Below, piece after piece: positions 23,001 to 51,908 of a stretch of 51,908 nucleotides of DNA. Position 1 is the first letter of the stretch. Every line of letters starts with the position of its first letter. The translations under genes and the position numbers were made by a program. The DNA is from Basidiobolus meristosporus CBS 931.73 (lineage: Eukaryota > Fungi > Basidiobolomycota), in the NCBI GenBank assembly GCA_002104905.1, contig MCFE01000625.1, forward strand, positions 1 to 51,908, read 5' to 3'. The notes under the pieces are model-generated. The model did no database searches. It had not been told where the DNA came from and worked only from the letters and a program-made list of their open reading frames with translations.

Positions 23001-23550
23001 TAGTACGGTTGGAGTCTTCTAGACGGCCTCTTCCACGGGCCTCCATCTCGGGGGAAATAGGGTAGGTTTCGTTCTCCTTGAGGCTCAGGCCAGGGATACT
23101 AGAGTAGTCCTCGGGGCTATTCTCAGTTATGAAATAGATTTTTAGTCCAGGGATTGCTTCCTCAAGAATCTTTGCGGTCTGCTCATATTGGGGGTGGACT
23201 ATCAGGACATCCGCTTTTCCATCTTTTAGGAGATGAGTCAAAGCATCCACCGAGTTCTTTGTGCTCAGTTGCAGTGCAACAGCTCGGGCCCTGATCAGGG
23301 AGAGCACCAAGGCACAGTACTCCACACAATTGGAAGAGAGGATCCCGACCACCGTGTTCTCTGTAATTGGTATATCAAACGTTTCCCACAAGTGAAAGGC
23401 GTTGTATATGGACATATCTCTAAGCTGCTTATAGGTGACCATGTGCTCTTTCTGTTGAGCATCTGTGTGGATGATGGCCGTATTGGACGCCATCTTCCTG
23501 GCGTAATGGTCTAGTAGAGTGTTGAAATCGTTGAATTGGACACTTGGCAT
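20079..23550 (-). CDS. NRPS-like adenylate-forming (carboxylic acid) reductase copy 1, A-T-T-R, one frameshift at about 20814
   Basis: A domain: HTSGSTLFPK, YGMTET, FHTGD, GRYDDILVHSNGEK, AKGNIARK. Two T domains: DMGMDSIAAM and DLGMDSIAAM. R domain: TGASGYLA, HGAWRMDF, NGYSRSK, FRYGQISG. The C-terminal 259 aa are in another frame because of one extra base relative to copy 2. Confidence 0.92.
20343..22065. repeat. About 1.7 kb near-identical direct repeat, copy 1 (pairs with about 24951-26671)
   Basis: Line-by-line comparison at an offset of about 4607 shows only scattered substitutions. Identity drops sharply outside the tract. Confidence 0.93.
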
Positions 23551-24706
23551 TCTGATTGTTTAATGTTTGGCACTCCATCGCCAAACACCGCATTTTATAT
23601 TGGTTCTTAGGTGCGTCACCCATGCTACGACGCGCCTGAAGTAGCATAGTCCTCGGCGGAACTGGAAAAACTAATCGGTCCTTTGTAATGCCAGGATGGG
23701 GAGGCATAATCATCCGTGTTTCGACCTTAGTTGTCAAGATGGTACCCTCGCTTACATTCGATGCAATTGATTCGGTCGTGCGGTGCGTGTATGGTGACTC
23801 AGTTTATCCACATGTATACATTTCATTCAGGGGCCTATTCTCTTCATCGGAAATGCAAATATGAATAGTGCATTGCCTGATACCCCTGAGAACCCATTGT
23901 TAGGAGAACTTGGATTTTGCAGCAAGCACCTGAATTCGATACGCGTACGATTACCTAATGAAACCCCATACTTGCTTCACCTGACATCGGATTTAAATTT
24001 CTCCCGAGACTCTTCTATCCTCGATGAGAAGCTGACATTCATTGCCATTAATAACTATTAGTAACCGTTAATAAATCGTCACAAGCAAATCCTTCAGAAA
24101 CCAGGATTTCAGATTCCCGATAGGCGGGTCACGAATTAATAGAAGAAACTAGGAGTTACTGATGCTGGTCCTTGGTTATCAGCATCAATCCATCTGTTCA
24201 CACTAGGCAGAAGAAGGAGGAGCTCCATATCAATGTTATGGAGGCTGGGGATGAGGTAATTATTACATGGATCCATGGCGCGTGAATACCCAACGTACAA
24301 CACCCACTTTACCATTGCAAAGAGAGTTGATTGGAAATCAGGCTGATGCTTTGATTGATGGCTATATCTGAGTTACACCTGATTCTTGTGAAACATGTAC
24401 TGCTTGATTAGGGAGTAACTGTGATGCCCAAATCGCTCCATTCGATAGGTCACTTCATGACTTTGTAGGTTCAGTTACTAGATTTACGCCCTTATTCGTG
24501 ATAGATATGATGTCAAGGCCCTGACATGCCAGCTACAAATAATCATGATTGTAGTCAAGTAATAGGTTCGGGTTGGGTTCGGGTTCAGTCAAGCTCGGAC
24601 TTCAGTTAGGTTTTATTATCTCATTATTACATACAAAGAATTGTTAGGCCAGTGTTAACTGTAGAATGTTGCTTGACTTGTATATTACAGTTGATAAGCT
24701 GGAGGG

Positions 24707-27700
24707 CTAATGGAAATCCGATTCGTCCAGAAATCCGATTTGTCTCCAATAGTCAAGATAACTGGAGATCAATGTCTCGTTGATAGTGGGGCATTCCTTG
24801 GCTAATGTTACGGAACGATCACAAGTAACCTCGGTATCCAGCCGGCCAAAGGTGGTCGCCGAAGGTGAGCTCGCCATCTTCTCCAAAAACGGCAATAGAG
24901 TTAGAATGGGATCATCAGGTTTAAGACCGTTCTTCGTTTGGGTGAGCTTCAATAGGTTGGTCCACCATTCCTCCATAGACATCATCTTGATCTGGCGACC
25001 AGTGAGGTTGCCAACATATCCAATGAGCTCACTCCATGACTCAGCTGGGTGTGGATTCACCTCGTGGTAGACTGAGATGCTCTCATCTGGTTGCTTTTGC
25101 CGGGTAATCAGCTCTACCAGACTCTTGGCTCCGATGTTCACCGGAATCCAATCAGTGGGTAGGCTCATCATTGGTGACACCCCAGTCTTGATAGCGTTGC
25201 GGATGAGAATAGGGAACTGCTCGCGAGTATTCCAGGCTCCGGTCGTGCTGTTGCCTGATATCTGGCCATATCGAAAGATTGTCACCGGCAACCCTTGCTG
25301 GGCCATTCTGACCAGCGCCTCCTCTGCGACCAGCTTTGACCTGCTGTATCCATTTGGCATTGCAATGCGGATATCTGGTGGGTGAGGGGCCTCGGGGATC
25401 AGGGACCTCGAGTCAGCAGCGCATGCACCAATGCTCGATATGAATATGTACTGCTTGGGCGCAAGTCCAGACACTGCGAATTTCGCTAGGTTCAGGGTCG
25501 GGGGTAGGCAAGTGGGCTCGAACGCCTCAAGGTTCGAGTTGAAATCCATTCTCCAGGCCCCATGGTAGATGTGGGTGACATTCTCCCTCAAATGGTTGAA
25601 CGTGGCCTCGTCTAGGCCAAAGTGGGCATCACTCAGGTCACAGGGGAGCACCGTGAGCCTGTCCTCATTAGCCAGCAGCACCTCCTTGCTCAGGTGGAAG
25701 TGGTCGAACGCCCCCTCGAGTTTTCCTCTCGACGCATCCGCGCTGTCCCCACGAATCAAGCAGTATACGTGATCGACCTCGTTGTTCAGTAACAGCTCGT
25801 GGATTACGTGGATGGCCAGATACCCAGAGGCTCCAGTCATCAGGATGCTCATTCCAGCCGAGTCATGAGGTGACTGCTTGGCTCCGAATGGACCGATATC
25901 CTTGAGGGTGTACTTGTCGACAAATCGCTCAAAGTAGGCGTCAAGATCCTCAACATCATCCTCAGCCCCATTCTGGGTCTTGGCTGCGTTGGAAGCGCGA
26001 ACCAAATACTCGGTGAGTGATTGGATGGTTGGATATTCGAACACTAACGAGTAGGGAAGGGTGAGGAAGCCGAACCTCTTCGAGATCACACTGCGGAACT
26101 CCATGGCTGCAATGGAGTCCATCCCGAGATCTACGAGGGATGAGTCATGGTTCGCGAAGTGTTGCGCACTCACATCGAGTATCCTCGCAATGCTGGTCTG
26201 AAGGAATCCTCGGATATTCTCCGGCTCCACGACTGCCTCCTTCGCAATGGTGAAGATGTGCCAGCCCAGGGCCTGGATGGTTGCGTTGTCGAAGATGGAA
26301 GCAAAGGCGAGTTTGAGCTCAGGAATCTGAGCCATGATTCTGCCGTGGAGCTCCATCGCGGCAATCGAGTCCATCCCCATATCAATGAGGGATTTGGAGT
26401 GGTCACTGAACAGCTCAGCGGGCTGATTGAGGATCTCCGCAATGGTTTGTTGAATGAAGCACTCGATGGAACCAGGATTGATCACCATTTCTTGAGAACG
26501 ACCTGACTTTGTGTCGCCCTGTTGGTACAACTCCTCAATCTCCTTCTCGTACTCGATCAAGATCTTTTTGCGAGCAATGTTCCCTTTGGCCGTGCATGTA
26601 AGGGCTCTACCTGGGGGCAGGATGTAGATCATATTTCTACGTATTCTGGAGTGCTTGGGAATCTGTTGATTAATATCATGGGTTAGGCTTTGAATCAATT
26701 GAAAAGCGCCTTCGCGATATTTCTCCGAAGATAGCTCCACCAGCAAGCAGGTGCCAGATCTATTCGAGCCTAGGATAGCGACGTTGTTGAATTTTCCTTT
26801 CCCTTCAGCCATCAACTGCTTCTCAATGGTAGTGGCCTGGTCTTCTCACCATTGCTGTGCACAAGGATATCATCGTATCTTCCTTTGTAAAACCATTTGC
26901 CGGAACCAGCAGGGGTTTCAACAAAGATGTCACCAGTATGGAAAGCACCAGTTTTGGGATTGATGGGAAGGGAAGGGGCCAGACAAGGATCTTCCTTGAG
27001 GAAAACCATCTCCTTCTCTCCCTCAATACCTCTATTGGTAGAAAACATGTGGTTTCCGGATTGACAGGCATCAACAAATTCCATTCAGGCTTTTCAGCCA
27101 TTAGCACGATTCCAGAAGTCTCTGTCATTCCGTACATTGATACCATATGAACATCTTCCTCTACCAGCCTGGTGGCGATTTGCTCCGAAAAAGCTGCACC
27201 ACAAACTATGATCATATCTAGGTTTCTCAGCATCTGGTATACCGTGGGGTCCTCCTCAGCTGTGAAGTAAATCTGCTCCAACATCCATGGAACAAGCAAC
27301 AAAACGTTGGGATGGTATTGCCGTATCGTTTTGACCAGGTTATTACCGGTTGGGACGAAGGTACCTGATGCAGATGGAGGGATGACGAAAGTCGCGCCAT
27401 AGTAGATGATTCTAATGAACTCGCATAAAGTACCAGCCGCATGGAATAATGGCAGAAAGCCGCAGGCGATGCTTTCGGAATTGATCGGGATTGCCTGGGT
27501 GCATTGGATACCAGTGATTATCTGCCGACTCCCTTGAGCAATTAGTTTAGGGAACAATGTACTGCCTGATGTATGCATGTACATTATAATTCTATTAAAA
27601 TCCTCAGGGCGGCTCTTGACGAGCGACTCTACTTCCGCGGGGATTGCATACACCTGATTTGTCTTGGGAGCCAAATTAGGAAGGGAAGGGAAATCGTCCA

Positions 27701-28136
27701 TCGCACTCTCGGTCAAGAGTAGTATCTGAAGATCGGGCATTGCCTTTGCGATCAATCTGGCTGTCTCGATGAACTGCGGATGGACAACAAGAATGCTTGC
27801 TTTGCCTTCCTTCAAAAGATGGATCAATCCCTCAGTAGAGTTTTTCGTACTCAAATTCAGCGAAAAAGCCCGTGCCCTGATTAGGGAGAAAAGCAGCGTA
27901 CAATATTCAATACAGTTTGGGGCCAGTATTCCCACCATGGTATCCTCTGAGATCGAAATACCGCATTGATTCCACAGCTGTAGCGCATTGTAAATAGTTA
28001 AGTCTCGGAATTGCTTGTAAGATATCCGCTGCTCCTCCCCTTGAGCGTCGGTGTATATGAGCGCAGTTTTGGAGCCCAGTTTCTTGGCATAACAGTCTAG
28101 TAAAGTGTTTAAATCCTTGGATTGGATACTCGGCAT
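24707..28136 (-). CDS. NRPS-like adenylate-forming reductase copy 2, A-T-T-R, two apparent -1 indels (about 27030 and 26829)
   Basis: ORFs of 437 aa, 90 aa and 702 aa in successive frames are collinear with copy 1 and carry the same A, T, T and R motifs. Both breaks are runs one base shorter than needed to keep frame. Could be a pseudogene or sequencing error. Confidence 0.88.
24951..26671. repeat. About 1.7 kb near-identical direct repeat, copy 2
   Basis: See copy 1 at 20343-22065. Confidence 0.93.
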
Positions 28137-30047: not shown

Positions 30048-32066
30048 TTACTGCTTCTTCAACCTTGAGTTTTGGGAGGTTTCACTCGCCACCGTGCTGC
30101 TTGCCTCATCATCGGAGTGGGAATGGAATTCCTTTGAGATCATACTGTAGGTGGGCCATGATGAGTTATCCACGCTGATCAAGCGTGATTTTATCATCTT
30201 TTCGCTTGGATCATCCTCTTGCCTTTCCAAGTCGACTTCCGGTACGCAGCAGCACATGTAGCTCTTGATGACATCCCAATAGAGAATTCCCAAAGGGATG
30301 ATAACTACCAGAATCACCAACCAGCCCAATGCACTGTCAAGCAACGACCAGAGAAGGCGACCGACACCGACGACAAAGGCTATGAACCAAGGAATATGAA
30401 TGATCACGTGCGAGGTCCGCTCCATGAAGGAGTCCCCTTTACGCATCTCACTGGCCGAGCGCGCAGATGTACCCCACTGGGTGAGATGAGGAGTGAGCAT
30501 GGCATACATTTTGGCTGGGATGAGGAAGAAGAAATAATAAAAGCCATAGAAGGAAAACAGGAAGAAGTCCAATCGAGCATAGAGCACCCAAGGGGTACAC
30601 AGGAGGGGAATGCGGACACCTTCTTGGGATAATCTGCTGTCGAACTCGTATTTGTTTACCTTTTCGTCTTTGCGCACCAATTTGAGGGTGATCAGGAAGG
30701 CGTACAGAGCTCTGACAAGCCCGACAACCCAAACAGTAACCAAGAAGATTCCAAGTCGCTTGAGACTATGGCTTCCGTACAGATAAGCGAGCGCATTGTA
30801 TGCCAAGATGAAGGGGTATACTGCCTGGATGCTCATCTCCACGCATAACCAGGGTGAGTGAAAGATGTATACTTTGGGGAACCAGAGGAGCTCTCTATAG
30901 AAGGACTTTCCCCAACGAGTCTGCTGTTTAATCCATCTAACCACTGTGGCGGGTGCGTCGGAGTAGCAGTAGGCATGATGTGTATAGAGAACCTTGAGAT
31001 TTTGATGGAGAACTTGATTTGTAAGGTGGCGATCGTCACCGAACGTAGTCTCGGTCTTGGCAAATTTCTGAGTCACCCAAGAGCCCAGAACGACTTTAAG
31101 AATACGAACGTCATACAACCCGAGGGGGCCGCTGACACACAATACGGCTCTGTTGAAGGACTGACAAGCACGCTCAATATTGAAGGCGAACCAATAACGG
31201 AGGGAGCACATTCTGGCCAAGAAACTGTCGCTCTTGTTCCAAATCTTGACGTCACCGGTTACAGCACCAACATTTTTTTCGCATTGGATGCATCTGACCA
31301 AATGGCCGATGGCATCCTCATCTACCAAGGTGTCGGAATCCGTTGTGAACAAGTAGCCATCACACTGGAAGCCCTCAAGCGCCATAAGGAAGCCGGTAAA
31401 CATCGCGATACGCTTGTGTCCGTGTGGTTGGAGAAAGCAGATATGTTGGCTGGATTCAAGGTTGTAAGCACTAACAATATACCGCACGTCTTCACTGGTA
31501 TGTTTCCATGCCCAAGCTTCAGCCTCCTTCGTGGTATGGCCTTCCTCCAGAGATTTGTCATACATGCGCTTATAAACGGTAGCAATGCTCTCTGGCAGAG
31601 ACACGATTACTCCTTCGGGGAATACTCGAACAAACTCTTCAGCCATCTCCTGGTCGGCCTCCTCGTCACCATCGCAGACAGCAATCACCCTCGTTAAACC
31701 AAGGTAAGTGGACCTTTTAAGACTCTGGAGCGCAGCGGACCAGGCATTGATCTCTTCACGATAACCAACAATCACAGCATTCACCTCCTTGGTCTCCTTG
31801 GCGTCCAACACCTTTTTTGCAACACGATTCATTCGAAGCCGGTTGAGGGTGGCAAAGATCACCTGAACAACGAAGAACGAAATGATAACTATGCCGTAAA
31901 TACCTAGGGTGAGCCAGGATGTGCCGGCCACATTCACTTTCAGCACTAGCCCTACAATCACTGCAGCCACGAAACATGGGCCTAGCAGCACTTTGATCAG
32001 GGCGAAGCAATAGAACCAAAATCCCGTAGGATGTGGTGGAGGATACGGTTTTACCTCATCAGACAT
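30048..32066 (-). CDS. Class I hyaluronan-synthase-like GT2 processive glycosyltransferase, intronless
   Basis: 672 aa. Two N-terminal TM helices, then GYREE, TDSDT, VGAVTGDVKIWN, LRYWFAFNIERACQS, CVSGPLGLY, TFGDDRHLTN, QQTRWGKSFYRE, C-terminal TM helices and WGTSAR. These track vertebrate and chlorovirus HAS motifs (YWMAFNIERACQS, GDDRHLTN, QQTRWSKS, WGTSGR) rather than the chitin synthase QRRRW. Confidence 0.88.
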   Translation of the reverse strand: MSDEVKPYPPPHPTGFWFYCFALIKVLLGPCFVAAVIVGLVLKVNVAGTSWLTLGIYGIVIISFFVVQVIFATLNRLRMNRVAKKVLDAKETKEVNAVIVGYREEINAWSAALQSLKRSTYLGLTRVIAVCDGDEEADQEMAEEFVRVFPEGVIVSLPESIATVYKRMYDKSLEEGHTTKEAEAWAWKHTSEDVRYIVSAYNLESSQHICFLQPHGHKRIAMFTGFLMALEGFQCDGYLFTTDSDTLVDEDAIGHLVRCIQCEKNVGAVTGDVKIWNKSDSFLARMCSLRYWFAFNIERACQSFNRAVLCVSGPLGLYDVRILKVVLGSWVTQKFAKTETTFGDDRHLTNQVLHQNLKVLYTHHAYCYSDAPATVVRWIKQQTRWGKSFYRELLWFPKVYIFHSPWLCVEMSIQAVYPFILAYNALAYLYGSHSLKRLGIFLVTVWVVGLVRALYAFLITLKLVRKDEKVNKYEFDSRLSQEGVRIPLLCTPWVLYARLDFFLFSFYGFYYFFFLIPAKMYAMLTPHLTQWGTSARSASEMRKGDSFMERTSHVIIHIPWFIAFVVGVGRLLWSLLDSALGWLVILVVIIPLGILYWDVIKSYMCCCVPEVDLERQEDDPSEKMIKSRLISVDNSSWPTYSMISKEFHSHSDDEASSTVASETSQNSRLKKQ

Positions 32067-40412: not shown

Positions 40413-43028
40413 TATTATAGACGGAATCAGAATCTGGTTGATGTCTTTGATGTCCACAGGCGCCTCTTTTTATATCAAGCACCCGTAGTTAAGATGGAAT
40501 GGCTTTGAGAATCTCGACCTACTTGAGGTTGCACCAGCAAATAAGAACAAGATTGCGGGTGAATGGGAAGCAAGTGTTGGAATATCGTTAGCCGATATAA
40601 ATGGTATAGATCAGCTTTCTATACATAACTTTCCATAAATAAACATTACGGACTATGGCGACACATATAAGCTTGCATCAGAAAAAGCACTTACTCCCGA
40701 AGGCTTGTGGTGTCAGATTTAATTGTTTGTATTTTCATTAAAAACAATGCTGATTGCTTCACAATAGAGTTGCCTAGGTGATACAATTGCAATGAGTTGC
40801 GCAAACAATACAATTAGAAGTGGTTACCTAATGTCGATCCATTCTGTATTAGCCAGATTTCAAATGATGACAGGTTCTAGATTATACAGAAGTTGATGCC
40901 AACATATCTTTACTTGAGACGCAACTGGATGCGCTCGTTGAGTGGGTACCGTGGAAGCAAGCAAAGCATAGCGTCAATATACTCTTCACCCATACTAACT
41001 TCCTCATTGACAGTTGAAGTGCATTAGAGCTGCTTATACAATAAACCTGGTACTGCCATAGAGCTTATAGAACTAGTGGCATTAGAATATGGTGTAAGGT
41101 GAATCAATCAATGCTGAGTGCGAAATCTATATCCAGCGGTAAAGGAGAGTGGTGGTTAAACCACTATAAATTCTGATATTATTCACGCGGCTACTTACTG
41201 CCTGGATCAGGCAATGATCTATCCACTGCTAGTGGTACATACTGCCCTTAGTACTTCTCGGCAAACCAACTAGAGGCTTAAGAGAGTCAGAATATCTTTT
41301 GAATCATCAGGAACATATTTGCTCAGTCCGGTAGCTAATGGGATCCGGTATGAAAGGAGATACTCAGACCACCATATAAGCATGATGTAAGAAATTGCCA
41401 CCAAGAAAACAACGCCCATTGCAGGGCCAGTCAATATAACGATTTCAATTGCTAGTTAGCAGAGCTATTTGTAACTTGATGTTCGATTGTGACTTATGGA
41501 AAGGCCTCGGAATATTAAGAATTCATTGAAATGAAAAACACACAGAGTGATAGTGGAACCAATACTCATCGCACTCATCCATCCATTAATCACTTCCCTG
41601 ACACGGCATTGCACCCATAACTGTCCATTATGTATACCAGCTTTTTGGGGATTTGAAGTAGCAAATTTACAGTAATAGTGCCGTTATACTCACCAAAATC
41701 TACCATGAAATACTGCAATTCTTCCATTTATTCATTTTTTAAACAATGTTGCGTTGATATTGTCCAACCCAGCCCTAAAACTGCTAGAAGTCGCCTGTAA
41801 AGCCTGCTCTTTACCCAACAAAACCATAAAAATATACACCCACATGTTTACATGCCGCTGAGTTGTATTTAAGAACATGATTGCGGGTGAATAGGAAGCG
41901 AGTGTTAGAATCTCCCTGACCAATGTATACAGGGGAGGCTGTCTTGCTCTCAATTGGCTTCTAAATATTGCTGTAACAAAAACAATCATTGTGGACTATC
42001 ATGTTGCATATAAGTCAGAGACTAGGTCGAATGCATGGCAACTCAACATATTAGAAAATTTTGGGAAAGCAAAAGCAATACTCCGCATGATTCAAAGCCC
42101 ATTGGTTCTCTTCCTCAAAGTAACATTGCTTGGTTTATCCAGATGGGAAGACACGCGAGTTATACAGTAGAAATAATCAACCAATTTTGGCTACAATGTG
42201 AGAAAGTGAAGGTACACTAAATAGTTGGCACCTCTATACTGGTGTGATATGACTTGATAAGTGCTACTTGATGGGAATCTTTTCTTTTTGAGAGATAATG
42301 ATGCTTACTACTGCAGATGTATTTGCACAACAAATTTTGGGATACTGATAATTTATCCAGCCACATATGTTTGCGAAATGAATTTGGCTAGTGCTACACA
42401 TTTAGACAGGATTACAGTCAAGTCCCCAATCAGAGCCACTGGGAAAATCATTGTAGATGGTAATTATCTGCTAAGGCTGCGGACCATGACTAAATCCATA
42501 GCTATCCCTGTGAAAAATTGCAAACTTGGAATTCATCTGATTATCAGCTGGTTTTCAGCTGGTGTTTTTCCTTCTGATTTTCAGTTGCAATTTGTGATAG
42601 AAGTAGCAAGCAGCCAATTACCCAATTTGTTATGAGTGCTAGTTGGCCTTGTTTTGTCCTGGAAAATATGTCTGCTTGACTGTCCAATAGCTAGTACCTG
42701 CAATATTGATAGTAGACAGTTTTGAGAAACTTGGAATTCAACTGAAATCATGCTGGTATTCCACTGGTGTTTTGTTAAATTTTTTTCTTATGATATGTCT
42801 TGACCACAGTATGGAATATCAGACCATGGCTTTCTGATGGTAAAACTAGGCACATCTAGAGCTTGGCATCCATCACTCTGATTGATGTACAGTCTGGCTT
42901 ATTCAAAGACATAGCAGGACTGAATACTTTAAGTAAGGTAACTAGTATCTCTTCAGGTAGAAAGACCACAGTATGAGGGCAAGTATGCAATGCTCAAAGC
43001 CAGTTCAGATAAGGCAGTTGCATCAGGG

Positions 43029-44052
43029 GAGGGAAAGTCACCAAGGTAGGTGAAATCTTTATTTGATTTCAGACAAGTCTAACTACAAATAAAGAAGCCA
43101 GCTGGGAATAGAAGATTCCCAAAGTAAACACTAAGTTGAATATGAATAAATCTAAGCTAAAGTTAAGGCAGTATCCCAGAGTACACTGGGGTTCAGGTTT
43201 ATGGGGGAGTGAAGTAGATAAGCTTGAGAGATATAATAATCTTTTAAGAAGTGGGTGACAGCAGGTGAAGGGGAGTTTTTGATAAGTGAAGTGAATCTTG
43301 AGATCAGAGATTCCTCTAATGAGAAAGTCTTGTAAACTGGAGAATCAGGAAACTCTTTAAAGGCATGGTCAGAAGGTTCCCAGTAAAACTGGTCAGAGGC
43401 GTTTTGAGAGAATTCTTTAGCAATACTTTTGTCAAGTACTACCTCAAGAGTGTGATGGTTGATAAATCTCATGTTGACAATCTTGGATAAGTTGTAACCT
43501 TGTTCCTTGAGATACATCCTACGCTCAGATATAGGAATAAACTCCACATTGGCAAAGTAGCAGACAGCCCAGTCAGTAGCAGGAGGCAAATCAGAAGTGG
43601 CAGGAAACTTTCTTTTGGTCTTGGGAGGAGCAGCAGGATGTCTTGAAGAAGCAGGAAGAGGCTTTTTGACAACTTCAGAGTAGGAAGAGTGAGCAGGAGC
43701 AGATGATTCTTGGGGAGTCTTGTTGGCAGGAAGAGTTGGCACAGGGACAATAGATTCTTGCAGATCAGAGAAGGAAGAAAAGAGCTTTTGAACTTGTTTC
43801 TTGAGTAGAGCATTTTCAGCTTCAACAAGTGCAAGCCTTTCCTCAAGGAAAGAAATCTGAAGGGAATGGAGTGAAGGCATAAGAAATAAGAAGAAGAGGG
43901 TAAGATGGGGTGGGTGAGAGGGAAAATTAGCAGGGAGAAGAGAAGGAAGGAGCAAAAATTCCAGAAGTCAGAATTTATAGATGGATGGACAAGGGTAGAT
44001 GAATGGATTATTCCTGGGTTAGGAAAATTAGCAGGGAGAAGAGAAGGAAGGA
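43029..44052 (-). mobile_element. Telomere-associated non-autonomous retroelement type B, copy 1 (ORF1-only)
   Basis: 1038-bp period repeat. Bounded by TCAGGG (43023-43028) and GGGTTAGGGTTAGGG (44053-44067). Shares its 3' terminal module with the LINE. Confidence 0.85.
43152..43880 (-). CDS. ORF1-like protein of type B element, copy 1 (242 aa from ATG 43880)
   Basis: Coiled coil FLEERLALVEAENALLKKQVQKL, then SYSEVVKK, then LPPATDWAVCYFANVEFIPIS...LSKIVNMRF...LEVVLD, similar to LPPASTWTVVYLKQVPWTPIS...LSRIVNLAW...LEVILD in the LINE ORF at 48449-49165. Confidence 0.82.
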   Translation of the reverse strand: MPSLHSLQISFLEERLALVEAENALLKKQVQKLFSSFSDLQESIVPVPTLPANKTPQESSAPAHSSYSEVVKKPLPASSRHPAAPPKTKRKFPATSDLPPATDWAVCYFANVEFIPISERRMYLKEQGYNLSKIVNMRFINHHTLEVVLDKSIAKEFSQNASDQFYWEPSDHAFKEFPDSPVYKTFSLEESLISRFTSLIKNSPSPAVTHFLKDYYISQAYLLHSPINLNPSVLWDTALTLA

Positions 44053-44067
44053 GGGTTAGGGTTAGGG

Positions 44068-45071
44068 AGGGAAAGTCACCAAGGTAGGTGAAATCTTTAT
44101 TTGATTTCAGACAAGTCTAACTACAAATAAAGAAGCCAGCTGGGAATAGAAGATTCCCAAAGTAAATACTAAGTTGAATATGAATAAATCTAAGCTAAAG
44201 TTAAGGCAGTATCCCAGAGTACACTGGAGTTCAGGTTCATGGGGGAGTGAAGTAGATAAGCTTGAGAGATATAATAATCTTTGAGGAAGTGGGTAACAGC
44301 AGGTGAAGGGGAGTTTTTGATAAGTGAAGTGAATCTTGAGAGCAGAGATTCCTCTAATGAGAAGGTCTTGTAAACTGGAGAATCAGGAAACTCTTTAAAG
44401 GCATGGTCAGTAGGTTCCCAGTAAAGCTGGTCAGAGACATTTTGAGAGAACTCTTTAGCAATACTTTTGTCAAGTACTACCTCCAGAGTGTGATGGTTGA
44501 TAAATCTCATATTGACAATCTTGGATAAGTTGTAACCTTGTTGCTTGAGATACATCCTATGCTCAGAAATAGGAATAAACTCTACATTGGCAAAGTAGCA
44601 GACAGCCCAGTCAGTAGCAGGAGGCAAATCAGAAGTGGCAGGAAACTTTCTTTTGGTCTTGGGAGGAGCAGCAGGATGTCTTGAGGGAGCAGGAACAGAC
44701 TTTTTGACAACTTCAGAGTAGGAAGGGTGAGCAGGAGCAGATGATTCTTGGGGAGTCTTGTTGGCAGGAAGGGTTGGCACAGGGACAATAGATTCTTGCA
44801 GATCAGAGAAGGCAGAAAAGAGCTTTTGAACTTGCTTCTTGAGTAGAGCATTTTCAGCTTCAACAAGTGCAAGCCTTTCCTCAAGGAAAGAAATCTGAAG
44901 GGAATGGAGTGAAGGCATAAGAAATAAGAAGAAGAGGGTAAGATGGGGTGGGTGGGAGGGAAAATTAGCACGGAGAAGAGAAGGAAGGAGCAAAAATTCC
45001 AGAAGTCAGAATTTATAGATGGATGGACAAGGGTAGATGGATGGATTATTCCTGGGTTAGGAAAATTAGCA
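44068..45071 (-). mobile_element. Telomere-associated non-autonomous retroelement type B, copy 2
   Basis: Roughly 95 percent identical to copy 1 by eye and about 20 nt shorter at the 5' end. Flanked by TTAGGG tracts on both sides. Confidence 0.87.
44190..44918 (-). CDS. ORF1-like protein of type B element, copy 2 (242 aa)
   Basis: Intact, same length as copy 1, roughly 14 amino-acid differences. Confidence 0.82.
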   Translation of the reverse strand: MPSLHSLQISFLEERLALVEAENALLKKQVQKLFSAFSDLQESIVPVPTLPANKTPQESSAPAHPSYSEVVKKSVPAPSRHPAAPPKTKRKFPATSDLPPATDWAVCYFANVEFIPISEHRMYLKQQGYNLSKIVNMRFINHHTLEVVLDKSIAKEFSQNVSDQLYWEPTDHAFKEFPDSPVYKTFSLEESLLSRFTSLIKNSPSPAVTHFLKDYYISQAYLLHSPMNLNSSVLWDTALTLA

Positions 45072-45086
45072 GGGTTAGGGTTAGGG

Positions 45087-45610
45087 GGGAGGAAAGTCAC
45101 CAAGTGGTGAAATCTTTATTTACTTATGACAAGTATCCAAAGAAGCCATGTTAATCTGAAGTAATTCCTAGAAAGCTAGGTCTGAGGGATATCTTCCTGG
45201 TAAGCCAGGTCTGAGAGTTGAGAAGCTGAGTGGTACTGTATTTCCTAGTTAGCTAGGTCTGAGAGAGGTTTCCTGGAAAGCCAGGCCTGAGAAGTGAGAA
45301 TCTGAGTATATCTGAGGTGAGTTGTACTGATTTGCGGTAGCTGATTTGTGGCCAGAATGGCCAGTAGACTGGGGGAACTGAGGGTATTTCTGGGCGATCA
45401 CTGGCCAAATTTACTAGGCAAATCTGACCAATTAGCATTTCAAGGATTTCAGCCAATCAGAGCCTTTACTTTGCCCAATGGTTGATCAAGCCATCTCCCA
45501 ATGAGCACACATCAATTTATTAATCAAATTTTGCTGGATCCAGGATTTGAACCCACTACCATGGGTATGGAAGGGTTAGGGATAACCACAAGGCTAAGTG
45601 TTCTTGGTTC
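45087..45610 (-). mobile_element. Type C non-coding element, copy 1 (putative tRNA-derived SINE)
   Basis: No long ORF. The minus-strand 5' end has A-box-like TAGCCTTGTGG (45596-45586) and B-box GGTTCAAATCC (45553-45543) 43 nt apart. The 3' end is shared with the LINE. TTAGGG tracts on both sides. Confidence 0.8.
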
Positions 45611-45679
45611 TTAGGGTTAGGGGGGAGACAGTCACCAACAGGTGAAATCTTTATTTCAGTTGAAACAAAGAAGCCAGCG

Positions 45680-48433
45680 CTACTGTTGTAGCTTTGATAC
45701 AAGAGTGTGTAGCTGAGGGGAATTTGTAGGTAAGTTAATAAGAAGTGATGATAGTTCTTCAGTGCTCAAGACACTGTTCAGTGGGAAGGGGGGTAGCAAG
45801 AGAGGTAAGAATGACTTGTGAACAACATTAATGAGGGGAATGTGATAAGGATTGATATTCATCATAAAGGGAGTGTGCTGCTGCAGATATTGCTGCCAAA
45901 GGTCTGTCAAGTACTTCAGGTAGGCCAGCTTGGGTTTTTCTGACTGCAGAATATAGTGTGCAAACTTCTTGACTTCAGGATCTCCAAGTATAGTTCTCCA
46001 GCAGGAGTCAGGTGTTGTGTGGTGTGTTCTCTTCCAGGCCTTAATCAGTGGGTTGTTGCAGTTGTGAAGTCTGAGGTATAATCTGGTTCTAAGGTAGAGA
46101 AGTCTGATCTTATAGGGCATAAACCCAAAAGCACCAAGAATAGCATGTCTGTAGGGGCATTCAGGCAAATGAGGCACCAAGGAGGTAATGCACCATACTG
46201 CAAACTTGTCAAGCTTAGTGCAGTCTCTAGAAGTAAGAGAGAGAAGTGGTAAGCCAAATTCCAGGACAGGGAAGACAAACTGCTTAAGTAGAAGGAGGCA
46301 GCTGGGAGCTGAAGTTGTAGGAGGAGTAACAGCCAGTAGCTTGTGGAGTGCCTGTCTTGCCAGGATAATTCTCTTCTTCAGGTGTGCTCCAGAGTCTAGT
46401 CCAGTAGGAAGGAAAGGAAAGCCAAGATATGTAGCAGAAACCTGAGCAGGTAGAGTGGAGTTCTGCAAGTTGATGGGAGAGCCCAAAGGTACTGTCTTTG
46501 CAATGGAAAGCTGGAGATTATTCTTCTGCAGATACTGGTGGATGGTCTGGGAGTCTTGTTGTACATTGGAGGAGGATATTCTGATGTCATCAGCAAAGAG
46601 AGTAACCAGGCAGTCAGCTGAGAGTCTTGGGAAATCATTCAGGAAGATGGCAAACAGTATAGGACCAAGCACAGAGCCTTGAACCACTCCATTAGGAACT
46701 GAGAACACAGCTGATTGCTCACTTGGGTGCAGAATTCTTGCTTGTGGATCCAGAAACAGAGACCTGACAAGGAGGGTGAGAGAGGTAGTGGAGAAGCATT
46801 GCAACTTGGACCAAAGCAGATTTCTGTCAACTGAATCAAAGGCCTTAGTAATATCAAACAGAACAGAGGGATACTTGCACTGGAGAGAGTGATCTTGGCT
46901 AAGTATGACTGCATATTCCAAGGAGAGGCCAGGAACAAAGCCAAACTGTGCAGGATGAAACTTGAGGGAGTCAGAGTAGAGCTCCTGAGCAAGCAGAAGC
47001 TCAAACACCTTTCTGCAGGTGGGCAGCAGAGATATTGGCCTGTAGGAGCTAGGATCCAGGTGCTTTCCTTTACCCTTGTACAGTGGCAGAACATTTGCAA
47101 AGGACCATTCCTCAGGAGTAGAAAGCTGGGCTGAGCATTGCTGAAACAGTGGAAGCAGAAGTGCAGACATGGCCTTGGTACTAGTCTTCAGAAGCTCATA
47201 GGAGATTGTGTCCACACCTGGAGCAGTAGAGTTGGGAAGCCTCTTGAGCACATTATGGATTCTCCTTTGATCAAGTGCAAGTGGGATGGGCAGAGTCTTG
47301 AAGTCAGGATGAAAGCCAGGAGTTGAGTACTGCTTTGTAGAGAAGAAGATGTTAGCCAGCTGTTCTGTTGAAGGTAACTTCCTGGAAGAGGGCCTCATTG
47401 CCCTGTAGAGTCTTGATACTGTTCTTGTTATAGAGTTGGAAGATTGCAGAGGCAAGGAACTCATAATATGATCCCAGAGCTGAGTATGCAGAGTGTGGTG
47501 AATTGCCTTGGAGTGGTGTATTGCTGTCAGGAGGAGTTTCTCTGTTTTTGGGTTAGGGAAACTCAGGTAGCTTTGTTGCAGGGCTGAAACAATGGATTCC
47601 CATTTTCTTGAGGTAACAGCAGTAGTCTTGCATGGCAGTGAGAGGGAGGCAGACACCAGAATCAGATGCTTCACAAAGAGCCAGGCATAGTTGAGATCAT
47701 CTGGCAGAGAAAGTAGCAAACTGGCAAGCTTCAAGTAGTTCCCAAAGTCTTTCTTCTGATTCTTGGTAGCTTTGTGGGTGAGCACAGTAAGTTTTGGCAG
47801 CTTCTTCTTCACAACTGGTTGCATAGAAAGGGACCAGGCTGGGTGGTCAGAGGCTCTCAAGGATCCTAGCTCAGCTCCAGAGAATTGCTTAACTTCATTC
47901 ACAAAGTAGAGGGCAGCAGCAGAAGGGCAGATCCAGTCAACACATCTTTTCTCAGATTGAGCACCTAGTGCTAGCAGGTGGCTTTCTCTCAGGAAGTTCA
48001 GTAGGAATGTAGACCTTGGCTTCATTCTTGCAGTCAGAGTAGTCTTGTTCTCAGGATGGGGAATGTTGAGATCTCCAAGCAAGATAACAGGTGTTGATAT
48101 AGATTGTTGGTATTGCTGAACCTTCTGGCATATAACTTGCACTTCCTGAAGGGCAAGACTTGGAGGCAGATAGCAGAGCACCAGACTGATAGTTGGCAAC
48201 TGGAGAGCAGCACAGTAAGGGGAGTAAAGAGGAACACAGAGCTGAGGAGTATTGATGGTAGAAGAGATGAAGCAGATAGAGGAGGTATTCTTTGTTCTAG
48301 GAGTAGAAAAGCAATATAGATTAGTCAAAAGTATAGAGGGTAGCTGGACATCAATCAAACACAGGAGGGAAAATCTTGAAAGAAGTCTCTCTAGAGTTGG
48401 TCTTGATGGCTGTATGCTGTTGCAGTTAAGCAA
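45680..48433 (-). CDS. ORF2/pol: apurinic-type endonuclease plus non-LTR reverse transcriptase (917 aa, no initiating ATG)
   Basis: APE: LLNCNS, CYLPP, LLGDLN, CVDW, ASDH. RT: APGVDTI, SYRPISLLPTCRKVFE, QFGFVPG, LFDITKAFDSVD, GVVQGSVLGPILF, LFADDI, TYLGF. No C-terminal CCHC seen. Confidence 0.96.
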   Translation of the reverse strand: MLNCNSIQPSRPTLERLLSRFSLLCLIDVQLPSILLTNLYCFSTPRTKNTSSICFISSTINTPQLCVPLYSPYCAALQLPTISLVLCYLPPSLALQEVQVICQKVQQYQQSISTPVILLGDLNIPHPENKTTLTARMKPRSTFLLNFLRESHLLALGAQSEKRCVDWICPSAAALYFVNEVKQFSGAELGSLRASDHPAWSLSMQPVVKKKLPKLTVLTHKATKNQKKDFGNYLKLASLLLSLPDDLNYAWLFVKHLILVSASLSLPCKTTAVTSRKWESIVSALQQSYLSFPNPKTEKLLLTAIHHSKAIHHTLHTQLWDHIMSSLPLQSSNSITRTVSRLYRAMRPSSRKLPSTEQLANIFFSTKQYSTPGFHPDFKTLPIPLALDQRRIHNVLKRLPNSTAPGVDTISYELLKTSTKAMSALLLPLFQQCSAQLSTPEEWSFANVLPLYKGKGKHLDPSSYRPISLLPTCRKVFELLLAQELYSDSLKFHPAQFGFVPGLSLEYAVILSQDHSLQCKYPSVLFDITKAFDSVDRNLLWSKLQCFSTTSLTLLVRSLFLDPQARILHPSEQSAVFSVPNGVVQGSVLGPILFAIFLNDFPRLSADCLVTLFADDIRISSSNVQQDSQTIHQYLQKNNLQLSIAKTVPLGSPINLQNSTLPAQVSATYLGFPFLPTGLDSGAHLKKRIILARQALHKLLAVTPPTTSAPSCLLLLKQFVFPVLEFGLPLLSLTSRDCTKLDKFAVWCITSLVPHLPECPYRHAILGAFGFMPYKIRLLYLRTRLYLRLHNCNNPLIKAWKRTHHTTPDSCWRTILGDPEVKKFAHYILQSEKPKLAYLKYLTDLWQQYLQQHTPFMMNINPYHIPLINVVHKSFLPLLLPPFPLNSVLSTEELSSLLINLPTNSPQLHTLVSKLQQ

Positions 48434-48448
48434 CAGAACTTCAGGTAG

Positions 48449-49210
48449 TCAGGCAGAGGTTGTAGCTTCTTCAGAGGCAGCATTGACAATGTGACCTGCA
48501 GAGTCCCAGAGCTCTTCAAATGGTGCATCACTTAAGTCAGCAAGGAGGGAAATGGCATGATTCTTGAGGAAGTATGCCACATCATAGGAGGGGGCTTGTC
48601 TCTTGATGGCAGCAAAGAAAGACAGAATGGCAACATGGGCTGGAGGCTTGTTGAACAGTAGAGAGTCAGAGGATTCAGATTCTTCAGGCACTATCTTGAA
48701 GTCAGTTTTCAGCCAGTTAAGGTTCTTCTCCACAAAGGCAACAAATGGGTCAGCAATGTTTTGGTCTAGGATAACCTCCAGAATCTTCCCTTTTCTCCAG
48801 GCCAGGTTGACAATTCTTGAGAGCTGAATATTGCATGCCTTGAGTGCTTTCCTGATGTTGGAAATGGGAGTCCAGGGAACTTGCTTCAAGTACACCACAG
48901 TCCAGGTAGAAGCTGGTGGTAGGTTTGCTGGGGGCTTGTAAGTCCTTCTGTGTTGCAATGGAGCTGCAGTAGTCAGATTGGAGTCCACATTCTCAGTAGA
49001 AGGTTTTCTTGATGTGTCTTGCTGAATAGTACTGGAGCTGGATGTGCTGATAATTCTTGCTAGAACCTTGCCTGCATAAGTCTGAGGTATAGCTGAGGTG
49101 ACTGTAGAGGTGGTGGCAGCTGGTGCAGGTGGAGAGGCAGAGACTGAAGCAGGAACTGAGGTCACCTGGGAGAAGGCAGTAGGAAGCAGGTTTTCTGGGA
49201 GGAACAGAGT
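48449..49210 (-). CDS. ORF1 C-terminal segment (ORF1b) of the LINE
   Basis: Open frame from just after a TGA at about 49213 to TGA 48449. Homologous to the C-terminal domain of the type B ORF. Has no own ATG (track start is GTG). Confidence 0.75.
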   Translation of the reverse strand, partial: TLFLPENLLPTAFSQVTSVPASVSASPPAPAATTSTVTSAIPQTYAGKVLARIISTSSSSTIQQDTSRKPSTENVDSNLTTAAPLQHRRTYKPPANLPPASTWTVVYLKQVPWTPISNIRKALKACNIQLSRIVNLAWRKGKILEVILDQNIADPFVAFVEKNLNWLKTDFKIVPEESESSDSLLFNKPPAHVAILSFFAAIKRQAPSYDVAYFLKNHAISLLADLSDAPFEELWDSAGHIVNAASEEATTSA

Positions 49211-49958
49211 TCACTATCCAGTTGTTCTGTAAAACACTGGAGTAGCTTTTCTGTGGAACAGGATCTTGCTCTTGAACAGGAACAGAAGCAGGAGGCTGGG
49301 GCTGAGCAGTAGTGGTAAGGCAGTGGCACTCCAAGGAAGCTTTTTGCAAGGCATCTCTGGCAGTTTTCAGGGCAGTATTGGCTTCATTCTTGAGCTTCTT
49401 GCATTGGGCATCCAGTCTCTTGTTTTCAATAGCCAGGGCAGTATTGGCAGCCTCTAAATCAGCAATTCTCTTCTCAATTGCAAGGAATCTCTGAAGAAAT
49501 GCATCAGTAGAAGTGCTGGCATCTGGGAGAGCAGTGGCAGGAATAGAGTCCATTGACAGTGGGCTTCTTGGAGGCAAGGAAAGTGGACTGGCAGATTCAG
49601 GCACAAAAGGAGATATCCTGGCAGGAGGAGAAGGAGTATCCAAGGCAGTAACAGAGGCAATTCTTGTTGGTGAAGCAGCAGCAGGGGAGGCAAGCCTGTT
49701 CAGAAACTGGGCAGGAGAGAGTGCTTGAGGAGAGGGAGTCTTCAGCTTGCCAAGCATGTCTTCCATCAGAGTGATACCAATATTCCTGGTGCATTTGCAG
49801 AGAAAAGTAAGCTTCCTGAGTCTGCCAGCTCTTCCATTCCTTCTGATAGTTCCTTTGTTTCCACAGTTGGGGCAAGAAATCTTCTTGACAGACTTGTCAA
49901 AGCAATCAAGAACCTTCCTTTCAGGTGTAGTGGGCTCCTGTTGAGGTTTTGGTGGCAT
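48993..49958 (-). CDS. ORF1 N-terminal segment (ORF1a): Zn-ribbon-like CxxC...CxC, Pro/Ser-rich linker, coiled coil
   Basis: ATG at 49958 (MPPKPQQ). CPNCGNKGTIRRNG...FLCKC, then heptad-rich FLAIEKRIADLEAANTALAIENKRLDAQCKKLK, then SYSSVLQN. Confidence 0.75.
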   Translation of the reverse strand: MPPKPQQEPTTPERKVLDCFDKSVKKISCPNCGNKGTIRRNGRAGRLRKLTFLCKCTRNIGITLMEDMLGKLKTPSPQALSPAQFLNRLASPAAASPTRIASVTALDTPSPPARISPFVPESASPLSLPPRSPLSMDSIPATALPDASTSTDAFLQRFLAIEKRIADLEAANTALAIENKRLDAQCKKLKNEANTALKTARDALQKASLECHCLTTTAQPQPPASVPVQEQDPVPQKSYSSVLQNNWIVNSVPPRKPASYCLLPGDLSSCFSLCLSTCTSCHHLYSHLSYTSDLCRQGSSKNYQHIQLQYYSARHIKKTFY

Positions 49959-50041
49959 ATCCAGAGTTTCAGCTTCAAATTTCAATTTTTGAGATTTTTG
50001 GGTGATTTTTGATGGGCGGGATCAAAATTAGGGTTAGGGTT

Positions 50042-50282
50042 GCGCGCTGTGACTGCTTTTTACGATCGCAAGGTCAGATCCTAGGAAAAAATAAAAATAG
50101 TTAGTAAAGGTGATTTAATGGATGGATGGATGGATTCGGAGTCAGATTCAATCAAAAAATCAAATCGTTGACTAATTTAAAGAGGAAAAAATAAAAATAG
50201 TTAGTAAAGGTGATTTAATGGATGGATGGATGGATTCGGAGTCAGATTCAATCAAAAAATCAAATCGTTGACTAATTTAAAG
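50042..50282. repeat. Block with two tandem 100-bp units (50083-50182, 50183-50282), directly upstream of the LINE
   Basis: Units read as identical. The first 41 nt contain several CpGs. Bounded by telomeric repeats on both sides but lacks the shared 3' module. Confidence 0.85.
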
Positions 50283-50292
50283 AGGGTTAGGG

Positions 50293-50814
50293 GGAGGAAA
50301 GTCACCAAGTGGTGAAATCTTTATTTACTTATGACAAGTATCTAAAGAAGCCAAGTTAATCTGAAGTTATTCCTAGAAAGCTAGGTCTGAGAGATATCTT
50401 CCTGGTAAGCCAGGTCTGAGAGTTGAGAAGCTGAGTGGTACTATATTTCCTAGTTAGCTAGGTCTGAGAGAGGTTTCCTGGAAAGCCAGGCCTGAGAAGT
50501 GAGAATCTGAATATATCTGAGCTAAGTTATACTGGTTTGCGATAGCTGAATTGTGGCCGGAATGGCCAGTAGACTAGGGGGAACTGAGATGAATTTCTGG
50601 GCGATCACTGGCCAAATTTACTAGGCAAATCTGACCAATTAGCATTTCAAGGATTTCAGCCAATCAGAGCCTTTACTTTGCCCGATGGTTGATCAAGCCA
50701 TCTCCCAATGAGCACACATCAATTTATTGATCAAATTTTGCTGGATCCAGGATTTGAACCCACAACCATGGGTATGGAAGGGTTAGGGATAACCACAAGG
50801 CTAAGTGTTCTTGG
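50293..50814 (-). mobile_element. Type C element, copy 2
   Basis: About 95 percent identical to copy 1 by eye. Single TTAGGG spacers at 50287-50292 and 50815-50820. Confidence 0.85.
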
Positions 50815-50820
50815 TTAGGG

Positions 50821-51343
50821 GGGAGGAAAGTCACCAAGTGGTGAAATCTTTATTTACTTATGACAAGTATCTAAAGAAGCCAAGTTAATCTGAAGTTATT
50901 CCTAGAAAGCTAGGTCTGAGAGATATCTTCCTGGTAAGCCAGGTCTGAGAGTTGAGAAGCTGAGTGGTACTATATTTCCTAGTTAGCTAGGTCTGAGAGA
51001 GGTTTCCTGGAAAGCCAGGCCTGAGAAGTGAGAATCTGAATATATCTGAGCTAAGTTATACTGGTTTGCGATAGCTGAATTGTGGCCGGAATGGCCAGTA
51101 GACTAGGGGGAACTGAGATGAATTTCTGGGCGATCACTGGCCAAATTTACTAGGCAAATCTGACCAATTAGCATTTCAAGGATTTCAGCCAATCAGAGCC
51201 TTTACTTTGCCCGATGGTTGATCAAGCCATCTCCCAATGAGCACACATCAATTTATTGATCAAATTTTGCTGGATCCAGGATTTGAACCCACAACCATGG
51301 GTATGGAAGGGTTAGGGATAACCACAAGGCTAAGTGTTCTTGG
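50821..51343 (-). mobile_element. Type C element, copy 3
   Basis: Appears identical to copy 2. Followed by TTAGGG GAGGG TTAGGG (51344-51360). Confidence 0.85.
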
Positions 51344-51360
51344 TTAGGGGAGGGTTAGGG

Positions 51361-51684
51361 GGAGGAAAGTCACCAAGTGGTGAAATCTTTATTTACTTAT
51401 GACAAGTATCTAAAGAAGCCAAGTTAATCTGAAGTTATTCCTAGAAAGCTAGGTCTGAGAGATATCTTCCTGGTAAGCCAGGTCTGAGAGTTGAGAAGCT
51501 GAGTGGTACTATAGTTCCTAGTTAGCTAGGTCTGAGAGTGGTTTCCTGGAAAGCCAGGCCTGAGAAGTGAGAATCTGAATATATCTGAACTAAGTTATAC
51601 TGGTTTGCGGTAGCTCAATTGTGGCCGGAATGGCCAGTAGACTGGGGGAACTGAGAGGAATTTCTGGGCGATCACTGGCCAAAT
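51361..51684 (-). mobile_element. Type C element, copy 4, 5'-truncated and capped by the telomere
   Basis: Matches the first about 325 nt of the unit, then switches at GGCCAAAT-TTAGGG into pure telomeric repeat. Confidence 0.87.
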
Positions 51685-51908
51685 TTAGGGTTAGGGTTAG
51701 GGTTAGGGTTAGGGTTAGGGTTAGGGTTAGGGTTAGGGTTAGGGTTAGGGTTAGGGTTAGGGTTAGGGTTAGGGTTAGGGTTAGGGTTAGGGTTAGGGTT
51801 AGGGTTAGGGTTAGGGTTAGGGTTAGGGTTAGGGTTAGGGTTAGGGTTAGGGTTAGGGTTAGGGTTAGGGTTAGGGTTAGGGTTAGGGTTAGGGTTAGGG
51901 TTAGGGTT
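51685..51908 (+). repeat. Telomere, (TTAGGG)n, about 37 repeats to the end of the window
   Basis: Uninterrupted TTAGGG array, with the G-rich strand running 5'-3' toward the end. Confidence 0.99.

Follow-up and report, generated by a model that had tools for sequence, protein, structure and literature searches.

The locus described here raises the question of how retroelements come to form a chromosome end in a fungus that retains telomerase. The window, i.e., the whole stretch of 51,908 nt that was analyzed (contig MCFE01000625.1), is part of the Basidiobolus meristosporus CBS 931.73 assembly (89.49 Mb in 1,366 contigs). Positions 43027–51684 are a head-to-tail array of seven retroelement units, and perfect telomeric repeats follow to the contig end. 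The array is most probably the work of telomere-specific long interspersed nuclear elements (LINEs) of the stringent type and of dependants mobilized in trans, both added to chromosome ends that finish in GGG.

The units were delimited by reading positions 42500–51908, with a repeat finder, and by BLAST of the units against the window. All seven have their sense strand on the minus strand and their 3′ ends pointing toward the centromere, and the spacers between them are 1–2.5 TTAGGG repeats. The single polarity and the short spacers had both been reported in a first-pass annotation made from the sequence alone, and both are confirmed. On the plus strand, every unit starts with a G-run, a short purine stretch, and then GTCACC-loop-GGTGAAATCTTTATTT. 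The window contains TTAGGGTTAGGG 40 times against 0 expected, and the plus-strand GC skew is +0.22 to +0.33 across the array and about zero elsewhere. BLAST of the units against window positions 1–43022 returned zero fragments of any of them.

The array opens with two copies of an ORF1-only, non-autonomous element that we call B. The first (43027–44055, minus strand) has a 242-aa open reading frame (ORF; 43152–43880), a 3′ module (43027–43105), and 101-bp 5′ monomer repeats (43921–44053). Its 3′ end adjoins unique DNA (...GCATCA) without TTAGGG, and the element's own G-run is at 43023. The claim that every unit follows a telomeric GGG thus holds for the later units, but not for this one. The second B (44065–45074, minus strand) is 97% identical to the first and has an intact 242-aa ORF (44190–44918). 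Next come a full-length, non-coding unit resembling a short interspersed nuclear element (SINE), called C (45085–45609, minus strand), and a full-length LINE-1-family element of 4.66 kb (45624–50283, minus strand). The LINE consists of a 3′ module (45624–45690), ORF2 with an endonuclease/exonuclease/phosphatase (EEP)/apurinic-apyrimidinic endonuclease (APE)-like domain and a reverse transcriptase (RT; 45680–48433), a single in-frame UGA (48449–48451), ORF1 (48452–49957), which is split by a 1-nt extra base at about 49181, and a 5′ untranslated region (UTR; 49958–50283). Distal to it are two full-length C units on the minus strand (50290–50816, with an A-box-like motif at 50793–50803 and a B-box-like motif at 50750–50760, and 50819–51345), which are 100% identical and have unlike junctions. 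The last C (51358–51684, minus strand) is 5′-truncated at about nt 330 and is capped directly by the telomere, a perfect 224-bp (TTAGGG)37 tract (51685–51908, plus strand) that reaches the contig end.

A 240-bp block (50040–50283) had been counted as a separate unit. It is instead the LINE-1 5′ UTR with two identical, CpG-rich 100-bp monomers (50083–50282, minus strand), and the full-length 5′ terminus is a monomer boundary. The TTAGGGTTAGGG dimer at 50028–50039 (plus strand) is not a junction. It is internal to LINE-1, since it stands at the same offset in 23/24 other full-length LINE-1 copies. In other copies the block lies in the same place, and is either trimmed distally to varying lengths or ends at this same terminus, a monomer boundary. 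Its homology extends to the 5′ UTR of related elements found in other samples (L035, L039), where the dimer is missing. Tandem 5′ monomers are found in both B (1 to >10 of 101 bp, in the window and on many contigs) and the LINE (1–3 of 100 bp), and both kinds contain a GGATGGATGG motif. CpG is depleted in the element bodies, with observed/expected ratios of 0.01 (LINE body), 0.05 (B), and 0.17 (C); the ratio reaches 1.35 in the LINE-1 monomers and is 0.72 in the unique DNA of the window. The nearly CpG-free element bodies differ from the CpG-rich 5′ monomers, which are a putative promoter.

The same organization is found across the genome. A pattern for the 3′ module has 1,525 matches in the assembly (1,406 forward, 119 reverse) and the reversed control pattern has 0, so the count is far beyond what chance would give. 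TTAGGG precedes the module by 5–12 nt in 1,219 cases (80%), and 92% of the modules share the polarity of the telomere tracts. Inspection of positions covered the first 100 matches per pattern search and 30 loci chosen for carrying the LINE. The modules are confined to terminal clusters wherever checked. On contigs C1 (345 kb) and C2 (264 kb, telomere ending at 264,158), all modules lie within the last 22 kb and 10 kb, respectively. The remaining large contigs listed have their modules in a single tight cluster at high coordinates, reverse-strand copies are at low coordinates, and contig C479 carries one array at each end, the two pointing in opposite directions. The proposal that the elements occur at telomeres alone, in one polarity, and attached to TTAGGG is borne out at these places. 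Because (TTAGGG)6 has 6,728 forward and 68 reverse matches, nearly all contigs must be written with the telomere at the right, and the modules have that same polarity. From this count and the size of the terminal tracts (about 190 bp), we estimate roughly 250 assembled chromosome ends with about six units per end. The plus strand carries 99% of the (TTAGGG)6 matches, at the right end in contigs with visible ends. Nearly every telomere-bearing contig has this orientation and a single telomere, which is probably an assembler quirk.

The 3′ module, about 60 nt long, is common to all families. A 9–10-bp stem, formed by a UCUUUAUUU box and AAAUAAAGA, encloses a variable apical part and is followed by a 5-bp UCACC/GGUGA hairpin and a pyrimidine tail that ends in a variable C-run. 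Single-sequence folds of seven family representatives gave the long hairpin in 7/7 and the small UCACC-type hairpin in 6/7, and an alignment fold of thirteen representatives gave the same two-hairpin structure. Recognition of a 3′ stem-loop is established for stringent-type LINEs (PMC4176376). The AAUAAA in the module was considered as a simple poly(A) signal and rejected as the main explanation; it is the 3′ side of the long hairpin, and the junctions are without poly(A).

Variants in the loop of the module mark distinct families: LINE-1, LINE-2, B (with a subfamily E), F, and C. The three-component system first proposed gives way to a larger one, with a minimum of two LINE and two ORF1-only families, the B subfamily, and C, all using one module. 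LINE-2 was recovered in partial copies (L003:6176–7401, L004:460–1495, L014, and L018). It has the module loop AAGTTGG and its own RT, represented by an open 372-aa C-terminal half that is 48% identical to LINE-1 over 357 aa. F (L026:600–1495 and L010:425–1400) is ORF1-only; its small hairpin is a variant one (ATCACC...GGGTGA), its tail reads GATNATCATCC, and no autonomous partner of it was seen among the inspected loci. An F-like tail is also found on a 128-nt unit in a foreign contig (L034:5517–5644). The description of B as ORF1-only is upheld by a match of its ORF to the C-terminus of the LINE ORF1 (34% identity, E 8e-21). Like HeT-A, B has a Gag/ORF1 homolog alone (ratio of nonsynonymous to synonymous polymorphism, pN/pS, 0.15–0.35), and its 3′ end is common to LINE-2, which does bear an RT.

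C is non-coding and SINE-like, as had been suggested, with A/B-box-like motifs and a LINE-type 3′ tail. The boxes are at nt 16–26 (A) and nt 59–69 (B) of the sense strand as extracted, with the full-length 5′ end 1–2 nt inside the extracted sequence. Each box has one mismatch and they are 43 nt apart. No comparable pair exists on either strand of the 43 kb of unique DNA in the window. A tRNA ancestry is unconfirmed. ARAGORN found nothing, Rfam gave no tRNA match at E up to 10 (141 nt), and the support for it comes from the box motifs only. Of the features of tRNA-derived SINEs, C therefore has the RNA polymerase III boxes and the LINE-shared tail, but no recognizable tRNA head. The tRNA-like head contains CCCTAACCC. 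In the C body (window 50370–50510, and the same part of every C), a stretch of about 65 nt is directly repeated, and the two copies, built around CTAGGTCTGAGAG, are about 85% alike.

The families resemble one another as far as the GCTTCTTT box and diverge directly upstream of it. Beyond the small hairpin, LINE-2 and B have identical tails, C has nearly the same one, and those of LINE-1 and F are different. At the 3′ end, B and LINE-2 are 88% identical over 77 nt. The tail of C is 93% identical to LINE-2 over 41 nt and 89% identical to LINE-1 over 37 nt. The LINE in the window had been taken as the mobilizer of both B and C. Because their 3′ tails are most like that of LINE-2, which is absent from the window, B is more likely to depend on LINE-2 than on LINE-1, and C probably does as well.

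Junctions were scored at 83 places, from 29 loci and the window. The G-run is 3–9 nt long and varies even among near-identical copies. The perfect telomeric sequence upstream of the G-run has a median of 6 nt, equal to 1.5 repeats when the GGG is counted. It amounts to ≤2 repeats in 87% of the junctions, although a few have as many as 7. Short spacers follow precise full-length 5′ ends and truncated 5′ ends alike. Arrays that start on non-element DNA do so with 0–2 repeats, and long terminal tracts sit on full-length 5′ ends at 8/18 loci. No poly(A) was seen at any of the junctions examined in the window and the inspected loci.

ORF2 of the LINE encodes an RT (RVT_1, E 4.1e-26, 92 bits vs. a cut-off of 29.6), and its best sequence match in the PDB is human L1 ORF2p (E 4.5e-13). 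The N-terminal 200 aa are conserved in relatives, with the motifs LNCNS, CLIDV, GDLN, VDW, and SDH, and Pfam reports a weak Exo_endo_phos_2 match in ORF2 (PF14529, E 3e-4). A fold search with a model of the N-terminus returned EEP proteins in 30 of the top 32 rows, with the R1Bm endonuclease first (Z 9.6–9.7), then the TRAS1 (Z 8.9) and L1 (Z 7.0) endonucleases. An hhalign comparison with insect APE domains gave E 1.2e-4 across the GDxN...SDH motifs. By fold, hhalign, and motifs, the ORF2 N-terminus is predicted to be a diverged EEP/APE-fold domain. Pfam finds no domain downstream of the RT, and the restriction-enzyme-like (REL) endonuclease that follows the RT in the CRE clade, without APE, is lacking in LINE-1. 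The classification as an APE-RT LINE is thus retained. Two features of the R1 clade are missing: Pfam finds no zf-CCHC in either piece of the window ORF1, and the junctions have no poly(A). The LINE has 5′ truncated copies, and more of its 3′ than its 5′ sequence is present in the genome, as is typical of LINEs.

ORF1, 502 aa in intact copies, combines a Cys motif at its N-terminus with a coiled coil and, at its C-terminus, an RRM-like core. The core reaches a Z-score of at most 7.8, too low to rule out that only a common arrangement is shared, and the top rows do not include L1 ORF1p. Pfam matches to bZIP and DivIC only flag the coiled coil, and the ESM Atlas places ORF1 with unnamed clusters from Mucoromycota and Zoopagomycota. 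An extra base at 49181–49182 splits the window ORF1 into 342 and 253 codons. Since most read-derived contigs are without this base, the break is either a copy-specific frameshift or a long-read assembly error. In the copies examined (L002–L030), ORF1 and ORF2 share a frame with a single stop between them (here UGA then CUA), and the related element L031 has the same arrangement (ORF1 801–2114, ORF2 from 2118). This layout suggests readthrough or reinitiation.

The copies are recent. LINE copies are 99–100% identical and at least 14/29 keep both full open frames. The pN/pS of ORF2 is 0.29 (pooled, 24 copies), and together with the B values this indicates that the element ORFs are under purifying selection. 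In read-derived contigs of the source sample, depth is about tenfold lower at the LINE 5′ end than at the 3′ end, and 77 joints lead from internal LINE positions to module starts via short telomere-like inserts. Judged from copy identity and selection only, addition appears to be ongoing. Two adjacent Telomerase_RBD segments above the Pfam cut-off on contig C935 show that the genome encodes TERT, as had been expected.

Related LINEs lie on nine contigs from eight other samples. Those with the same 3′ module are in eight public samples (ERR14127404, ERR14042393, ERR14042384, ERR14656578, ERR14042375, ERR14127551, ERZ23872178, and SRR13100619), and another, on a contig that goes no further than the ORF2 stop, is in ERZ27274739 (loci L031 and L034–L042 in all). 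Among ORF2 proteins, the five nearest, from ENA and Logan assemblies, are 48–80% identical, and the next matches are RT-only and ≤32% identical. Seven of the nine contigs extend past ORF2 to the same module, and 6/7 of these then run into TAA or CCCTAA. One is a three-unit array in which the spacer is only TAA.

We infer from these features how the units may be added. The LINE RT would recognize the 3′ module and could then copy any RNA that bears it, which would account for mobilization of B, C, and F in trans. The C-run would pair with a G-strand 3′ end finishing in GGG, whose 3′-OH would serve as the primer, so that cDNA synthesis extends the G strand. Such an extension would put the 3′ end of the element toward the centromere and its 5′ end outermost; the observed polarity is therefore consistent with extension of the G strand from its 3′-OH. 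Telomerase would cap the new end afterwards. The variation in C-run length among near-identical copies would fit a priming register that is chosen afresh each time. The acceptors would be ends nearly devoid of TTAGGG, either in the healing of short or broken ends or in rapid successive additions.

Addition to nearly bare ends is the form of this mechanism that we consider about as probable as all others together. It is favored over random nicking because the spacers have about 0–2 repeats, compared to live tracts of about 200 bp. A TRAS/SART-like route is a tentative second, in which the EEP domain nicks duplex TTAGGG and target-primed reverse transcription (TPRT) starts from the nick. On this view the spacers would be short because 1–3 repeats suffice for the enzyme and it works on the first repeats of a tract, beside non-telomeric DNA. 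The EEP domain (GDxN, D, SDH) is conserved across relatives that are 44–76% identical, which argues for its use, and among its closest matches in structure are the endonucleases of R1Bm and TRAS1, which are site-specific. A nick on the G strand would also produce the observed polarity, and SART1 requires three repeats and inserts in the third (PMC7265360). However, with terminal tracts of about 200 bp, random nicking predicts long and variable spacers, yet 87% of the spacers are ≤2 repeats, and some junctions, e.g., that of the first unit in the window, have no repeat at all.

Improbable, though compatible with several of the junction features, is template jumping, by which a whole stack would arise in one event as the RT moves from one RNA onto the 3′ end of the next module-bearing RNA. 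The jump would take place at the RNA 5′ end or earlier, and the short TTAGGG stretches would come from read-through at RNA 3′ ends. The short spacers after full-length and truncated 5′ ends, the 100% identity of adjacent C copies, and the variable G-run length are all as this would predict. Against it, the terminal tracts on full-length 5′ ends at 8/18 loci show that single units are capped by telomerase.

Quite unlikely is that these are ordinary subtelomeric arrays, grown mainly by unequal exchange or break-induced replication between chromosome ends, with a LINE that is no longer targeted or active. Near-identical copies do occur on many contigs, and in Cryptococcus the Cnl1 arrays have been proposed to recombine with one another (doi 10.1101/2021.08.11.455996). 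But spacer, G-run, and truncation point vary unit by unit, even between identical neighbors, the ORFs are under purifying selection, and the 3′-to-5′ depth gradient fits repeated TPRT. That a long-read assembler collapsed or chained repeats is barely credible: telomere tracts that are almost all at right contig ends are an odd technical signature, but the same junction types are found in short read-derived contigs and in assemblies of eight unrelated samples.

Several observations count against telomere-directed addition by a LINE of this type, or at least weaken it. The Exo_endo_phos_2 match is below the Pfam cut-off (21 vs. 27.4 bits), the EEP model has low confidence (predicted local distance difference test score, pLDDT, 51.6), the usual catalytic Glu position appears to be Asp (LIDV), and PDB sequence and profile searches with the N-terminal domain gave no endonuclease match. 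For these reasons LINE-1 may or may not have an active endonuclease. The module gives modest covariation support, because its stems are nearly invariant: of the 15 pairs, two are compensatory, one is an A-U/G-U alternation, and the others do not vary. No RNA run among those searched contains the region. Finally, 20% of the modules do not have an exact TTAGGG in the 5–12-nt slot, and, given the places inspected, rare interstitial copies are possible.

If addition to G-finishing ends is the right reading, it may also serve the host. We propose tentatively, as a possibility less likely than the mechanism itself, that retroelement addition is a routine host pathway that heals and extends ends beside telomerase in a fungus that seemingly has hundreds of them. 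RNAs with a C-run would then be reverse-transcribed onto any end that finishes in G, even bare broken DNA such as at 43023. The elements would do more than occupy a safe niche: they would belong to the machinery that maintains telomeres, and they may let a karyotype of very many small chromosomes persist.

The unique part of the window has subtelomeric genes at 4907–7315, 20806–28136, and 30048–32066. These include a divergent fourth nitrate reductase paralog (56–60% identity to its paralogs, and ≤60% to the other three), tandem carboxylic-acid-reductase-like genes (one split in two ORFs), a subtilase, and a chitin/hyaluronan-synthase-like glycosyltransferase.

Retrotransposons specialized for telomeres are known from a handful of lineages, and the fungal ones on record are all of the CRE/REL type. 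We found no published description of the Basidiobolus system in the literature on Basidiobolus telomeres and transposons, and to that extent such an arrangement for an APE-type LINE in fungi has not been described previously. It adds an APE-type lineage in an early-diverging fungus that retains telomerase, a guild of at least six families with one 3′ recognition module, and a C-run tail that replaces poly(A) and is complementary to the GGG end of the telomere. It also adds what is apparently a telomere-restricted SINE-like element, of which we have met no earlier description. The roughly 1,500 young junctions in one genome are a natural data set on how a LINE RT finds a chromosome end. The system can also show how an end is divided between telomerase and retroelements, and how parasites of parasites originate when their niche has a single dimension.

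Close parallels are TRAS and SART of Bombyx mori (R1 clade), compared here by their features. They too are APE-type LINEs that live in telomerase-made repeats and coexist with telomerase. The structure of their 3′ UTR matters for initiation, and the endonuclease fold of LINE-1 matches TRAS1 and R1Bm. TRAS and SART have poly(A) tails and CCHC knuckles in ORF1 and sit within long TTAGG tracts, whereas the Basidiobolus elements have a C-run tail, no CCHC, spacers of mostly ≤2 repeats, and dependent ORF1-only and SINE-like families.

HeT-A, TART, and TAHRE of Drosophila (Jockey clade) are likewise stacked head to tail at chromosome ends in one polarity, with the 3′ end of each element on the centromere side, and the Gag-only HeT-A stands beside RT-bearing elements as B and F do beside the LINEs here. 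They join ends without sequence specificity, which resembles the first unit of the window on unique DNA. Drosophila, however, has neither telomerase nor telomeric repeats and its elements end in poly(A), while here TERT is encoded and TTAGGG caps every array. The Basidiobolus units are also much shorter and include a non-coding SINE-like family.

Among fungi, MoTeR2 is a non-autonomous partner of MoTeR. MoTeR (Magnaporthe), FoTeR (Fusarium), and Cnl1 (Cryptococcus) are also confined to chromosome ends, where they form arrays, and have 5′ variable tandem repeats (PMC12857005), and Cnl1 arrays in subtelomeres can be large (doi 10.1101/2021.08.11.455996). The 5′ monomers of B and the LINE recall the 5′ variable number tandem repeats of MoTeR and FoTeR as well as the monomers of mouse L1. 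In MoTeR, FoTeR, and Cnl1, all of them members of the CRE clade, the RT is followed by a REL endonuclease (PMC12857005), in agreement with the earlier statement that known fungal telomere elements are not APE-type. LINE-1 differs from them by its N-terminal EEP fold and the absence of a REL domain.

Telomere LINEs have been reviewed for TRAS/SART, HeT-A/TART/TAHRE, Zepp, GilM/T, MoTeR, and Tx1-1_ACar (PMC10088271). Zepp (Chlorella), GilM and GilT (Giardia), and Tx1-1_ACar (anole) are, like the Basidiobolus elements, telomere-associated in hosts with telomerase-type repeats (PMC10088271), and Zepp and the Gil elements form head-to-tail terminal arrays as well. They differ in belonging to other clades, which for GilM and GilT is CRE/REL, in having poly(A) or other tails, and in that no SINE or ORF1-only partners have been reported for them. 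A partnership of a SINE with a stringent LINE is known from the eel pair UnaL2/UnaSINE1. In the zebrafish ZfL2 family, a shared 3′ stem-loop tail lets the SINE borrow the LINE RT (PMC4176376), as the shared module may do here. Those stringent LINE/SINE pairs insert genome-wide, while the partnership in Basidiobolus is confined to telomeres.

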